From Auanema rhodensis (Eukaryota; Animalia; Nematoda): DNA of 64,000 nucleotides. The stretch lies in NCBI GenBank assembly GCA_964057225.1, contig OZ059895.1:15934001-15998000 (forward strand). Direction: 5' to 3'. The notes under the pieces are model-generated. The model worked only from the letters and a program-made list of their open reading frames with translations, was not told the origin of the DNA and did no database searches. Both the position numbers and the translations under genes were made by a program. Positions 39,868 to 47,100 of this stretch are shown here, piece after piece. Positions within the stretch are counted from its first letter, which is position 1. Every line of letters begins with the position of its first letter.

Positions 39868-40347
39868 TCTATTCTAAAAGTAAATCATTAAACTGCATAA
39901 TAGACCAAAGGGAGAGAGAAAGTTGTAAGTATGTTGATTATGATGAATTAGTAACGATGTTTCATCGGTACGAACAACGAAATTCAGCCAACAGTTTTAT
40001 TATTTACGGTTTGGTTGCCCGGTTTTTACCCAGAATTAATGTCTTACTTACCGCATTCTGTTTGTTAGCTCTCGTTCTTCGGGTTGTGTTACTGAATTTT
40101 TTTTTCAAAATTTTAGTTTACGATGGAAATCTCTCTCTTTCGCTGTAAACAATTTTTTTTCGTTGCAAATTTATTCCTAAAAAATAAAAAAACCAATCCA
40201 CGTTCACTAGTTATTTATAGCACGTGACTTAACTATGTCGAAATGTCTATTTGACTATGCACTTGCTGCTATTTCAAAACTGCCAATTCTCCCCGAATCT
40301 GACTTATTCTTTTGTTTCTTGTTTCCCTTTTTACGAATTTTAGATCA

Positions 40348-40840
40348 ATGCAATCGATAGATAGTGTTTGTGGACTTCAGTGTTTTTTCTCGGTCGTCGT
40401 AACGGGCTTCATATGGGGAGCGACCAATCCTCTTATGAGGATCGGCTCTATTTCGTCAGTTAGACCGTGCTTTCAAGGTGTTGTTAATGCCTTTTTTCTC
40501 TGAATCATTTCTTATTTTATGTGGTCTGCGTGCTATGTTACTTGATCTTATATCTCTTATTAAATGTTGGAAGTTTTCTATTCCGTTTGGTCTAAATCAA
40601 CTAGGATCTGTATGTGCTAGTCATCAAGTTTATTATTAAAATTTATGTTCTTAGGTGCTTTTTCACGCTTTAATAGCTAAATACCCGTTATCTGTCATTG
40701 TTCCTATAACAAATGCAGTCCAGTTGATATCTGCTGCCGCTGTTGGTCACTGTGTAGGAGATTCGCTGAACTCTCGAAGTCTCATAGGACTGTTAATAAC
40801 AGCATTAGGAATTGTTTTGATGATTTTTGCGGACCTATAA
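40348..40840 (+). CDS. TMEM234-family small DMT-superfamily membrane protein
   Basis: GFIWGATNPLMRIGS, FSIPFGLNQLGSVLF, LSVIVPITNA, GLLITALGIVLM; divergent from the BRO1 gene. Confidence 0.88.
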
Positions 40841-41516
40841 TAAGAATTGTTTTTGTATTTATCTGACCGTTTCAACTACTAAATGTCGTCATTTTTGTTT
40901 GTTTTGTTAAACCCATTGGCAGCTGCCTTAATTCTCAAAGCTTCGGATATAGCTAAAACTTCCTCGTGTTATCCCGCTTCATTGTCTGTGTTAATGCATC
41001 AGAAATCTGTACTTTACAGAACATCAGGATTAAAGTTTTTGTGTACCAGCTTCACTTTCCTCAACAAGCCTCAACCATTGCTCTTTCTTTGTTGTCACGA
41101 TGTGTCTCGCGCGAACATTCCGCGTCGCGTGCGATAGCTGCACTGGCCACCAGCCGCTATCGATGGCGCCGCCCATTTGCTCTTTCCACAACCACCGCCA
41201 CCGACGCATTTTCTATTTCTTTCATTTTATTTTACTTTTGCGAACAGTTTCAGTCGGCTGTCTTACAATACGCTCTGTACATACGGTTCTCACTGTTTGC
41301 TCAAATCCGTTACTAACTGTACCTTTTCGTCGTTATTCATTTTTTGCTCTCATTTTATCGATTTTGTGTATTTATCTGAATTTATAAATTATATTATAGA
41401 CATCTCTGGTGTCTTCTTTGGTAACACTTTCTTTAACTGATTACCCGTTCTTCACGCTCCGAGGGAGAGAGCGTGTATGGACGTAGCCCTCTACTGTCCC
41501 CACTTCGCATCTAAAG

Positions 41517-41973
41517 ATTCTTTCCGAAGAATCTAGTGAACCGTCCTTACCGCCCTTAACGGGTTTCGTAAGTTTTTACTTTTGTTTTTCAAAAATATGT
41601 ATAGCCGTTTGTATAGTGCTTTCTGCTAGAGTTACCATGTTTGGTTCTTAATCTGATATCGCTCTTATCAAAAAAATTTCATTTTATATCAGGCGTTATC
41701 TGCGAAAAATTATGAGCTAATCGATCATATGGCAGGAAGGTCGAAGCTCAAATTATTTTATTTCATGTGCGCAAATATATACGTGTTTAGTTTCAATCTA
41801 ACATCCGCCAACATAATGATATTTGATCAATTATGATATAATCTGCCATTTTACAGACTGACGAGGCCTTAGGCGTTATCTTCATAACCTACGCTCAACC
41901 TCAACTTAGAGCCAGTCAAGTACAGCTTGACAAGAACGCAGAACCTCCTTGGGATCCAGATCCAGTTTTCTGA
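41517..41973 (+). promoter_or_regulatory. Spliced non-AUG uORF of the AZIN1/ODC uCC type, about 55 codons (41517-41567 joined to 41857-41973)
   Basis: ATT (A at -3)-LSEESSEPSLPPLTGF|TDEALGVIFITYAQPQLRASQVQLDKNAEPPWDPDPVF*. No AUG, in-frame TAG upstream at 41484, gtaagt donor and ttacag acceptor in phase 0. Confidence 0.85.
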
Positions 41974-42019
41974 GGTTATCATTGTATTGCTATTTTTTCA
42001 ACAATTCCTTTAGTTTCAG

Positions 42020-42253
42020 TCTCATATCTCTGCTCCCTCTCAACTTCTCTGGTTTTTAAGCCAGCGTGTTCGCGACTGTTTTTCGCGTTCACGCCTATCG
42101 TCCTTTACCATATATAGAGCAGTAACGCGCGCTAGCTCGCGCGCTGTTTCTTTCCGTGGCATAACTCCCGCACCACCCGTTCTCCCTTGCAACTGGGAAT
42201 CGCCCGAAGAAAAAGCTCGCCGTTCGGGCAACCACGACCACATCCCACCTTAA
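42020..42253 (+). promoter_or_regulatory. Second AUG-less uORF ending Pro-Pro-stop in the ODC-like 5' leader
   Basis: 77 sense codons span nearly the whole leader exon and end ESPEEKARRSGNHDHIPP*; no ATG in the exon. Confidence 0.6.
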
Positions 42254-42335
42254 TTTCTTCGAAAAGGTAGGTGTTTTTTGACCGTGTTTTGTAATTTTTG
42301 AATTGTTTTTTAGATTCTAGCTCATTGTTTGCCGC

Positions 42336-44121
42336 ATGATTGAACGTCGTCGCCTTCCTTCTTCTTCTTACCATTCTGCTGACGAGGCTTGGTCTCGTGA
42401 CTGTTTTGCAGAGCAGACTATTTCTGTACATCCTAAACAGCATGACGCCGCTCATGTTGCTCGCAAAGTTGCCTCACAACAGGTATTTTGCACGGATTCC
42501 TGATTTGGAAGTAATTCGATTATATTAGATAACTGGAGCACCTTTTTTCGTGATGGATATTCCATCTGTTGTCCAGGCCGTTGATGACTGGATGACGAAT
42601 CTGCCACGATTCGCTCCTCATTATGCTCTGAGGTGTAATGCCGATCCTGTGTTGGCTCAGCTATTAGCAGATCAGCATGTAGGATTTGAAATTGCAAACT
42701 TGTACGAACTTGAATTGGTATTGAAAAATAACCATATTTTTATTTTTTATTCTGTTGTTTAAGGCTCAACAATTGGTTGACTCTTCCAAAATAGTATTCA
42801 GCAATCCTTTATGGACTAGAAAAACTATGCGTTTGGCTGGAGAAGCCAATGTTGGCACCGTTGTTGTCAGCCGTGAAAAAGAACTCCTAGATGCCGTTTC
42901 TTATGCACCTGATTCAAAGTACTTGTTTGATTTTTTGTTGTTGTTGCTATGGTAATGCGTTTAGTATTCTTATTGCTGTTTCTCTTGGATGTCCTGTTCG
43001 TGGAGAATCTGTAGCTACAACAACGGGATGTTGTTCCGACGAAGCTGAACAGCTAATTATGACAGCTTTCGAGTTAAGAGCTAAGTTTATTGGCTTTAGG
43101 TTTGTTTTTATTCTATAAACTTAAGTTAAATGCGTACTTTTAAGTTTCAACGTTGATAATACTGATCCGTCTATCTACTACCAAGCTTTAAAAGAAGTAA
43201 GAGGCCTGTTCGATTATGCAGTTTCATGTGGCTTATCTCCAAATACTGTCGCTGTCGGAGGAGGCTTTCGCTGTCCACGTGGCGATGATAAACTTCGTTT
43301 CTTTGAGGTACACCAACAAGTCTATTTGAAGATCTTACTTATTATTTGCAGGTTTGCGATGCTTTAACTGCTGCAGTCGAGGAAATGTTTCCAATTAAAA
43401 TGTTCCCTTCACTGAATTTGTTAGCTTCACCTGGAAGATTCTTCGCAACCTCTGCATTCTCTTTATGCACCAATGTTGTTGCGAAACGACCTCTAGACAT
43501 GAGTATGCACGAAATGAAGAGTATGTGATTCATTTATCATTACATTTTAAACCTTTGTTTTTCAGATAACAACTCTATTAATAATGTTGCGTTTGTTTAT
43601 CAAACGAATGATGGGATTTATGGATCATTCAGTTGCCGTTTAGCCGATTGTGATCCAAAATGCAGACCCCTCAATGTATGAGCTTATACTTGTTTTCCTT
43701 TTTTATTGTTTGTACTTTAACAGGAGAATGATAACGATGGTTCATTTCATTTGGGAACAGTGATTGGACCCTCGCTTGAAGCCATTGACGTAGCTCAGCG
43801 TTGGTTCTGTGGTCGTCAACTATCTGTTGGGGAATGGCTGTTATGGGAAAATATGGGAGCCTATTCTATGCCACTTGATCCTGATTACGAGGCTCCACCA
43901 GTGTACTATTATACTGGTAAAGATAACTGGTTCGTTCAAACAATTCGAAAGCCTATTTTTTTTGTTTTTTTAGGGACTATATCAATGCCAAAGGACGTAG
44001 AAAACAGTCTGCCGACTATAGCACTGATTCAGAAAACTCTGACTTCTCCAGTGACGTTGAGAGCATCTCTTCAGATGAGGAGCATGATCTTATTACTCGA
44101 TTTGACAGTTTCTTCGACTGA
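42336..44121 (+). CDS. Ornithine decarboxylase paralogue, predicted catalytically inactive (antizyme-inhibitor-like)
   Basis: PFFVMD, PHYALRCN, GFEIANLYE, VGGGF, SPGRFF, NDGIYGSF, GPSLEAID, LLWENMGAYS; acidic tail; in-frame TAG at 42318 fixes the start. Confidence 0.9.
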
Positions 44122-47100
44122 ACTGAACTTTTTTTTAGTGAATAATCTGATTTTTTTCTATTTTTTCTATTTATCCACATATTCATCACATAATCCGCGT
44201 GCGTGACTTGGCTTTTGTCTTTATTCTCCTTATATCCGGGATTTTATTCATAATTGAAATTGTTGGGAGTAGCATCATATCGTTCTTGAACATTTCCTCT
44301 CATAATTTCTTTCCATTTTCCTACTCACCAACTTTCATCTGAATTATCACTTTCGTGCAAAAGTAGAGAATAGTTTACCATTTTCAAAGTCCACTGGTGA
44401 TGTAATCCAAGTGGCTCACAATAAAATATGTTGATAATCCCGTTGTTTTTTTCTGTTCAACAAAGAATCGAAAGGAATTCATTGGAAGGGAGGGTTGAAG
44501 AGAACAACTGTATTCTATGTGGATTGCCTGCCGGCTATCTTTTAAAGAAATATGGCATAAGACCACACTTAAGTGAGGAAAAACATAAATCTATATTCAT
44601 AGGATCAATATTGTCATTGTGCATGTTTTTCTATGTTTTCATCTTTGTTTAAAGCTCCCGCTCTCTCGTCCGTTCGAGGTTTTGATGAGCTGTTTCGTTC
44701 AGGTTGTTTTCTTTTCTTGTGTTCCAGTTTTCTGCGGCTTCTTATTGTCTTCAAAAGCCTGCTCTTCTAGTCTTCAACTTGCATGCCAGTGTAGCAGTCG
44801 TGTGTATCAAACTCTATAGCTCAAACTACAGACTGAAATCCCAAATTTTTGTTGATAATTATGTGAAATGATCATTTTCACATAAAAGGACAGAGAACAG
44901 AGGTGATGACGATGACGGTGCGACTTCATATAGGGAAGTATGTTCCAGAAACGGCTATGAATAGGGACGTAGGACGTAAATAGAAGGAAGGAAAACAGCA
45001 AAGACAGAATGTGTATGTATATCTCATGTGCTACTTTCTTAAACGAATAGAAAGGTTTTAGATCTCTTCATAAAGTATTTACTCCCGTTTACAAGAATTT
45101 GCTCTCATGTGTTTGTGTCCTCAGGGGATGAGGTCGCTCGCAAGACTTCAACGTTCTTCTAGTTCAATGTACATGCACTTTTAAGAAAGGACAATCCTAG
45201 CAAGCAGTTCTTGTAAATAGTTTCCAGGCGTGTAAGATGCATTGATAGTATCAACATAAGTTATTTTCAGTGGCAAGTCATAGTTCTGGGGAACTTCTAC
45301 GAGTAAACGTTCATTTTTTTGGGTGACACCCTATGTCTCTCACTATCACTCACATGCACAGCTGGTTTAATTTGAATCAATACCAAAACGTTTGTCTGGT
45401 TTCTTATGATAAAAGCTGTTGTTGCAGTGAAGGTCCCAGATCATGTAGTTCACGTCACTTGTCTGTGGAACGATGTTGCAGCACTAGCAGGGGTTAACCA
45501 ACTAGCAGATTCATATATTTATATCGACTACTTGATAGCTATAATGATTGAACTAGCTAGAATTAGCTGGCTCATAGAATTCTTGATAGTCATTGGCTCA
45601 ATAGCTTTGAGAAGATGAAAGAAGAAGCCGGATTCTTATGTTAGTATTCTTCTTCACTTCACCCTGTTCGCCAGATATAACCCTGCTTTGGATATAAACG
45701 ATTACGTGTTCATCAATAATCTTATGATTTGCTTCAAGTGATTCGGGAAAAAAGGAAAAACTTGCGATAATAATTTGGCGAACTTTGATTTATTGGCCAT
45801 CGCAGCACCTTTTGATTTATAAATCTGATAGTAGAGAGAATGCAAGAAAGAAGAATGGATGGGATGGCTAACCGAAAATCATCAGCATAGTTTCATCAGT
45901 TATTTTTAGAAAATATTGATTTGCACAAGAACAATGGGTAGACGAAGGCTTGTTAATTTCTTTCTATTGATAGTAAGTTATAGAGAGTGTATGTTGTCTT
46001 GTGTAAGAGAGGGAGAGAGAGTTTGTTGATGTACTTCATGATAGATGTTTCATTTTTTTGTGGCAAATTTAATGTGAAACACTGCTTTGACCGGTCAAAA
46101 TACCTTCCTTAATAACACGATGATGGATTCATCGTTCATTTCAACAGCCCAAATCTGAATATAGATGAGTTCGTTGAACAGTTGACATCATCTTGTATCG
46201 TCATCACTTTTGTCTCTTCAACTTTACTAAGTCACAAATCCGCTTTTAACCAAACGACTGCCAGTTGTCGTCATTTTCTATTTTCTTAGCAAAAGAAGGA
46301 TCTATATGGATTTAGATGATTGTGGTTACAGCAGCAGTTATATTTAGCTCATATATAGTAGAAGAAGGAGAAAAAATACGAAAGACTAGTATAGTTTATA
46401 TACATGTCTATTATATTTGAGCATTTAACAACTACACAGCACCTGGTGGCACGTTGTGAAATACTCGTTTTGTTAGCCATTTCCGGAATTTTTCTATAGT
46501 CTTTGAAGTTGGCTGCTGCAATGATTTTTAAAAATTGTATGAAGAATACGACAAAGGTTGTTTGGCCTTGTTGTAAACGGACAGAGACAAGGGGGGTGAG
46601 TTGTAGATAAGGAAGGGGAAAACTGATGTTAGTGATTAGCTTGATTCAACACAGCTTATGCTTTTCCATATTATCGTTCATCGACTGTTTTGCAATCATG
46701 ACTAATCCATGTGAAATGCATGTGGGCAACTTGGTTTCTTGGTATTGGTTGCTGGGTTGGCATCCATCAGAGGTGGAATGGATGGGTGTGGGAGAAGCAG
46801 TCTATACTGGTAATAACACATTTTTTTTTGAAGACACATGAGGAAAACATGTTAATTCGGGGAGCCCGAAGATGAGATGTTCTGGTAGCATCTAGATTAC
46901 TATTAAGACAAAGCACCAAACCCGATTTCATCGTTGACGACATCGACGTCGACAGCGACAACGGCGACAAAGAAGGCATTGAGAAGCACGTAGTTCTCGA
47001 GCAGATGTTTGAAATATTCTTGAAACGGGAAACGCTTAATGAGTTTATTATCTGATGCTCCAGTATCTATCCTCGTAGTTCCTCAGTGCAACTCATTATC

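Follow-up and report, generated by a model that had tools for sequence, protein, structure and literature searches.

The uCC of vertebrate AZIN1, an AUG-less polyamine-sensing frame located upstream of the main ORF, was reportedly described by Ivanov, Loughran and Atkins in 2008 and by Ivanov et al. in 2018. Animal uCCs are devoid of AUG, usually AUU-initiated and carry adjacent prolines near their C-terminus (PMC2811004), and a Pro-Ser-stop ending has been stated for six phyla (PMC2811004). In mouse, replacing the AUU by UUU or scrambling the last ten codons abolishes the repression by polyamines (PMC4458265). Stalling at PPW when polyamines are high raises AUU initiation through ribosome queuing (PMC9082881). 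In yeast, EPP, PPW and Asp-Pro-type motifs have been identified as eIF5A-dependent pauses (PMC5499558).

Comparable sensors have been described outside animals and in the same regulatory circuit. Fungal ODC uCCs and the PS-stop uORF of plant AdoMetDC are likewise polyamine-sensing upstream frames, non-AUG or short, with adjacent prolines near the C-terminus and located in mRNAs of the polyamine pathway (PMC2811004), but they have no sequence homology to the animal frames, are thought to be independent in origin and range from 22 to 100 codons in length. The +1 frameshift sensor of antizyme (oaz-1) is also a polyamine-responsive translational switch and belongs to the same circuit as the uCC; however, it operates by recoding at a UGA, whereas the uCC relies on a stall with queuing. 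In C. elegans, it has been shown genetically that AZIN-1 (F53F10.2) is an antizyme inhibitor, which acts through OAZ-1 and mainly on polyamine transport (PMC13222480). According to a 2026 Ribo-seq paper, mutants of the polyamine transporter catp-6 show the change in F53F10.2 translation that altered polyamines would predict, and its methods set the ribosome occupancy of a region termed "uCC, uORF, or ORF1" against that of the main ORF (PMC13578949).

Here, we analyze a stretch of 64,000 nt from the nematode Auanema rhodensis (hereafter the window), in which an AUG-less, intron-split frame precedes an ODC-like gene. With a probability of about 0.8, judged from sequence features and from analogy with the characterized systems, this frame is the uCC of an azin-1 leader and would act in cis as a polyamine sensor, as in vertebrates. 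As with the vertebrate AZIN1 uCC, its host mRNA encodes a catalytically dead ODC paralogue of the antizyme-inhibitor type, and the frame occupies the leader; it has about 50 codons, no AUG and a conserved AUU start, and it contains an E-x-LG-x-[VI]-[LF] block as well as an NAEPPW motif followed by an acidic residue and Pro, the PPW being at codons 47-49 in both human and window. The NAEPPW of the window is identical to that of the human AZIN1 uORF peptide printed in PMC9648851, which was compared with the nematode peptides by eye only. The same printed peptide agrees with the vertebrate ending given in the first-pass annotation of this DNA (EGLGEVLY...FNAEPPWEPS-stop).

Several differences from the vertebrate element also emerge. 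Against a simple uCC match, the nematode peptide has no Pro-Ser-stop ending: vertebrates have EPS-stop, whereas nematodes have DPDP followed by two or three variable residues (four in Trichinella, RDNY). The variation is confined to the tail of this lineage and leaves the PPW core unaffected. The N-terminal part is basic in the human uCC and acidic in nematodes, and the nematode leader has, relative to vertebrate AZIN1, an additional AUG-initiated uORF (uORF0) and a second frame ending in PP-stop. With the Pro-Ser-stop ending as sole exception, all the sequence-level features of a uCC that could be tested are present, in support of the identity that the first-pass annotation had proposed.

Structure of the leader and of its transcript

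Coordinates are positions in the window, and the features listed below are all located on the + strand.

41477..41536, + strand: uORF0, AUG-initiated, 19 codons, stop TAG 41534-41536, in a frame that differs from that of the uCC
41517..41567, + strand: uCC exon 1, 16 codons following a putative AUU start (41517-41519), with an acidic SEES.EPS.PPLTG block
41568..41856, + strand: phase-0 intron within the uCC, 289 nt, GT..AG, joint found in 4 runs
41857..41973, + strand: uCC exon 2, containing EALGVIF as well as the invariant QLDKNAEPPWDPDP block; stop TGA 41971-41973
41944..41952, + strand: Pro-Pro-Trp codons, codons 47-49 counted from the AUU, predicted stall site
41975..42019, + strand: intron after the uCC stop, 45 nt, opening as TGA G/GT (the slash marks the exon border)
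42020..42253, + strand: second AUG-less conserved upstream frame, ending in ...HIPP-TAA, stop 42251-42253
42267..42313, + strand: last leader intron, 47 nt
42336..44121, + strand: main ORF in 9 coding exons, encoding the AZIN-1 orthologue, an ODC-like pseudoenzyme; ATG 42336, stop 44119-44121

The uCC frame consists of 55 sense codons without Met, 17 in exon 1 (41517-41567) and 38 from 41857 onward, followed by TGA. In the window, the C-terminus of the peptide is NAEPPWDPDPVF immediately before the TGA, the longer stretch being ...QLDKNAEPPWDPDPVF and stop. The intron-split, AUG-less frame of 55 codons put forward in the first-pass annotation, closed upstream by the TAG at 41484-41486, can be read directly in the window at these coordinates. 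Three features come in addition to those it had listed, namely the 45-nt intron after the stop, the AUG uORF overlapping the AUU and the second uORF ending in IPP-stop.

RNA evidence was provided by contigs assembled from four small runs of one study, aligned to 40900-44400 and used for structure only. As these contigs are spliced at GT..AG joints, they represent cDNA (the run type being labelled RNA only by guess). Contigs of two runs extend unbroken from 41459/41461 to 44400, and those of a third run from about 41472; across the four runs, eleven GT..AG joints cross the leader and the ODC-like CDS. The 41567/41857 junction, predicted from the letters of the genome, is present in contigs of all four runs, and the first intron is retained in one low-depth contig of one run, which fits pre-mRNA. 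Since single contigs cover the frame and the whole ODC-like CDS, leader and CDS belong to one mRNA, as the proposed regulation of one by the other supposed. No spliced-leader letters were seen at the 5' ends of the window contigs (41459-41472); the orthologous mRNA of a panagrolaimid (clade IV) begins with an SL1 tail.

Relatives of the frame across Nematoda

Used as query against 5.8 billion sequences, the exon-2 ORF matches nematode proteins with E-values from 4e-13 to 1e-5. These five matches comprise two N. brasiliensis sequences, one from Teladorsagia, one Logan mRNA contig and C. elegans NP_001368678.1, which is a 76-aa isoform of F53F10.2 listed under the name "AntiZyme INhibitor". A second search, with a profile built from these five matches, adds Necator, C. 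bovis, Steinernema, Ditylenchus, Strongyloides, Thelazia, Brugia, Litomosoides and Syphacia, Trichinella being also recovered with weak E-values. NAEPPWDPDP is found in every recovered relative except one soil metatranscriptome contig, which has NADPPW; the PPW to which the first-pass annotation assigned the stall is hence conserved. In the profile alignment, 16 columns are invariant at the C-terminus, whereas the two residues preceding the stop vary; the NAEPPWDPDP core recurs in each nematode clade recovered, from Trichinella and Brugia to Caenorhabditis and the strongylids. At the eight nematode loci that were fetched (C. elegans, N. brasiliensis, a panagrolaimid mRNA, a soil metatranscriptome mRNA, Ditylenchus, Teladorsagia, Brugia and Trichinella), the frame is always located just upstream of an ODC-like gene.

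It had been suggested that ORF finders miss this frame, which is only partly true: several annotations list a small hypothetical protein at this place, and WormBase an azin-1 isoform. Indeed, parasite annotations carry the azin-1 uCC as a stand-alone or mis-fused hypothetical protein, for instance Brugia BM10272, Necator NECAME_15225 and Trichinella Tsp_10547, together with entries named "Elongator complex protein 6" in Strongyloides and "UBC core domain" in Thelazia. The "hypothetical proteins" in the genomes of Brugia, Necator, Trichinella and other parasites are flagged here as mis-annotated azin-1 leaders.

The azin-1 gene of C. elegans is the orthologue of the gene in the window and shares much of its leader. 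Both have a phase-0 intron inside the frame and an intron one base past the TGA; the motif AAG-ATT-C is present in both, and their QLDKNAEPPWDPDP blocks are identical. Each leader also contains an AUG uORF that overlaps the uCC start, as well as a further frame closed by HIPP-stop, and in both a TMEM234-like gene lies upstream (a similarity seen by eye). The C. elegans locus differs by having no in-frame stop upstream of the AUU, and for this reason the frame has been annotated up to a TTG; in addition, its PPW is at codon 45 instead of 47, the middle of the peptide is devoid of the EALGVIF block, and the intron after the uCC stop measures 365 nt versus 45 nt in the window. More broadly, the position of the intron inside the uCC is common to window, C. 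elegans, N. brasiliensis and T. circumcincta. The uCC stop itself is retained in the mRNA, the 45-nt intron (41975-42019) opening one base 3' of it, a position also used in C. elegans; by sequence, N. brasiliensis and T. circumcincta use it as well, and Brugia does not.

Some variations in gene structure were observed along the way. The intron inside the uCC spans ~6 kb in N. brasiliensis, compared to 289 nt in the window, and in Teladorsagia two near-identical copies of uCC exon 1 are found ~785 nt apart, corresponding either to an assembly duplicate or to a real tandem duplication. Upstream of the azin-1-type gene, the window contains at 40312-40840 ORF pieces of a small membrane protein, which by eye resemble the TMEM234-family gene preceding C. 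elegans F53F10.2 and would suggest conserved synteny.

Start codon and distance to the predicted stall site

The ATT at 41517-41519, in the context aaagATTc with A at -3, had been singled out as the best near-cognate start of the frame. At the seven loci read at the DNA level, an ATT with A at -3 is found in all seven, within the context AAG/AAA-ATT, and all annotated proteins that extend into exon 1 have K-I ahead of the conserved acidic block. Furthermore, an in-frame stop lies 3 codons before K-I in N. brasiliensis and Teladorsagia and 11 codons before it in the window and in the soil metatranscriptome mRNA. The TTG located further upstream, which WormBase uses as the C. elegans start, was considered as a general start and rejected, since in-frame stops precede K-I and close the frame in these four other species. 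From these comparisons, AUU 41517 appears to be the best start candidate, as originally suggested.

Counted from the AUU, PPW begins at codon 45-51 in nematodes, at codon 47 in the window and also at codon 47 in the human AZIN1 uORF peptide (PMC9648851). A start-to-PPW spacing of 45-51 codons is compatible with queuing of ribosomes back to the start codon.

Among the alternative readings of the frame, the one that best survives places the main uCC start elsewhere, at the ACG 41559 or through entry after uORF0, in which case the vertebrate logic of AUU and queue would not apply. Against an AUU-only start, it can be noted that the C. elegans isoform in WormBase begins at the upstream TTG, that the window has an in-frame ACG at 41559, and that uORF0, which holds the sole AUG of the leader, overlaps the AUU. 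However, the TTG frame is closed in the window, N. brasiliensis, T. circumcincta and the soil metatranscriptome mRNA, and all species for which exon 1 is available retain K-I together with the A at -3. The acidic block right behind the AUU is conserved as a peptide, implying that translation begins there or earlier, and the distance from AUU to PPW equals that in human. We therefore regard a main start other than the AUU as unlikely.

Coding constraint

Coding constraint was evaluated over 24 ungapped codons in six species. In this set, pN/pS is 0.17 in the uCC frame, the two alternative frames giving 1.87 and 1.90; variable sites are distributed 7/6/21 over the first, second and third codon positions of these 24 codons, and all differences across LDKNAEPPWDPDP are synonymous. 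In Ditylenchus, an intron interrupts the PPW itself, suggesting that it is the peptide, and not the DNA, that is conserved. On this codon-level pattern, the uCC frame is under coding constraint, more than expected by chance.

Conservation of the peptide would also be expected if it were a free-standing micropeptide acting in trans, with no cis-acting translational sensor, and several genomes do annotate it as a protein, including an isoform in WormBase and NCBI. Nevertheless, its conservation is focused on the last 16 residues, at a known stall motif, a pattern typical of arrest peptides that act in cis; in addition, the frame has a non-AUG start and is invariably found in the leader of the same gene, and the vertebrate homologue acts in cis (PMC4458265). 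An exclusive function in trans is thus quite improbable, although a role of the peptide in trans and a role of the frame as cis sensor are not mutually exclusive. Finally, a chance open frame or an untranslated element functioning only at the RNA or DNA level (enhancer, splice element or structure), to which the nucleotide conservation extending upstream of the AUU could point, is effectively refuted by the codon-position pattern, with 21/24 third positions varying under an invariant peptide and a pN/pS of 0.17 versus about 1.9, and is further opposed by the persistence of the frame across all nematode clades despite differing intron positions, including the intron inside the PPW of Ditylenchus.

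The host gene as a predicted antizyme inhibitor

Translations of the exons of the main ORF match Orn_Arg_deC_N and Orn_DAP_Arg_deC. The PLP lysine is lost (K69 to R, within YALRCN versus FYAVKCN in true nematode ODC), as is Cys360 (C360 to L, within GPSLE versus GPTCD in true nematode ODC). In other nematodes, the homologues bearing a uCC have R, N or S at the lysine position. Because both the PLP lysine and Cys360 are absent, the sequence identifies the host gene as an AZIN-type pseudoenzyme. As vertebrate AZIN derived from ODC within vertebrates (PMC2811004), the nematode pseudoenzyme probably reflects an independent loss of catalysis on an ancestor that already had a uCC.

The panagrolaimid sample also contains a second ODC-like mRNA without K69 and C360. 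No PPW frame is present in its 188-nt leader, so that this mRNA corresponds either to an incomplete contig or to a paralogue devoid of the uCC.

Proposed mechanism and significance

The sequence and RNA data establish how the transcript is built, the homology of the frame, its coding constraint and the conservation of both the AUU and its distance to PPW. We propose the following mechanism for the uCC as a cis-acting sensor, in which the stall, the queue and the response to polyamines are taken over from the vertebrate work and from the C. elegans Ribo-seq report. Ribosomes would scan a long leader that has almost no AUG, and a minority of them would initiate at AUU 41517, with its A at -3. 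After 46 codons, the translating ribosome would meet Glu-Pro-Pro-Trp-Asp-Pro-Asp-Pro, where peptide-bond formation is predicted to require eIF5A. At high concentrations of free polyamines, the action of eIF5A at the stall would be impaired and ribosomes would pause at PPW. The following ribosomes would then queue back to the AUU, thereby increasing initiation at this codon and blocking access to the AZIN AUG 42336. Antizyme inhibitor would consequently decrease and free antizyme increase, and both polyamine uptake and polyamine synthesis would be lowered.

This is an element of a known kind and not a new mechanism, since its C. elegans orthologue has been annotated before and has served to read out polyamine state; the core finding is hence the correct recognition of a known element. 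A model with one uORF is incomplete, since uORF0 and the IPP-stop frame are also conserved in the leader. What may be new are these two parts, the single AUG uORF lying over the AUU and the second frame ending in PP-stop.

The uCC of AZIN and ODC mRNAs is among the best-understood metabolite-sensing arrest peptides, and by its sequence it is intact in this worm and across Nematoda. As its AUU start, its NAEPPW core and its start-to-stall spacing match those of human, nematodes, for which genetics and in-vivo polyamine sensors are available (PMC13222480), would offer a practical whole-animal system for testing the eIF5A/polyamine queuing model.

Additional elements of the leader

The AUG of uORF0 at 41477 is the sole AUG in the ~496-nt leader of the window. 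uORF0 reads across the AUU of the uCC and terminates 17 nt beyond it. The window shares this arrangement, in which the AUG precedes the AUU by ~40 nt and the stop follows it by 17-22 nt, with C. elegans, N. brasiliensis and Teladorsagia as well as with two clade IV mRNAs (the panagrolaimid and the soil metatranscriptome mRNAs), the frame of uORF0 varying between species. Shuffled leaders would be expected to contain 5.8 AUGs in the window (496 nt; P(<=1) 0.02), 9.9 in the panagrolaimid (682 nt; P(<=1) 0.0005) and 10.8 in the soil metatranscriptome mRNA (784 nt; P(<=1) <0.0005). As a phylum-wide feature, uORF0 was rejected, Brugia having a GTG at the site and no nearby stop.

The second upstream frame (42020-42253) contains ...PCNWESPEE...HIPP-TAA. 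Frames ending in IPP-stop or RPP-stop are found in the azin-1 leaders of all seven species examined for this feature, including Brugia (window, C. elegans, N. brasiliensis, Brugia, Ditylenchus and the two clade IV mRNAs), and the HIPP-stop frame of C. elegans is listed by WormBase as a 38-aa isoform. A frameshift linking the uCC stop (UUC UGA G) to the IPP-stop frame was considered and rejected, the frame relation not being conserved across species. In the window, the IPP-stop frame lies in +1 relative to the uCC and is open, with its phase unchanged by the 45-nt intron. The +1 frame of C. elegans, by contrast, closes about 22 codons after the uCC stop, and the second frame of the panagrolaimid mRNA is +2. 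The window, C. elegans and the panagrolaimid mRNA thus show no shared frame relation between the uCC stop and what follows it, and a fusion of both by frameshifting is unlikely.

In the rhabditid clades IV and V, where leaders are 500-800 nt long, otherwise AUG-free, and uORF0 has 19-21 codons, the azin-1 leader could tentatively be viewed as a three-part scanning device composed of uORF0, the PPW uCC and the (I/R)PP-stop frame, a possibility to which we give rather less credit than doubt. uORF0 would then serve as a gate: ribosomes translating it could not start at the AUU and might resume scanning after termination, so that uORF0 would determine what fraction of ribosomes encounters the polyamine sensor. 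Another possibility is that termination at the stop of uORF0 helps to load a ribosome onto the AUU. We are not aware of any report in which the non-AUG sensor of the vertebrate uCC is gated by an AUG in this manner.

A perfect 7-bp inverted repeat (CACGCTC ... GAGCGTG) is present at 41453-41475, directly preceding the uORF0 AUG and within the nucleotide-conserved block GGGAGAGAGCGTGTATGGAC. No covariation support was obtained for a hairpin at 41453-41475 (RNAalifold, -6.6 kcal/mol), and the RNA contigs begin inside the 5' arm of the repeat. Instead of forming an RNA structure, this repeat may belong to the promoter or mark the TSS.
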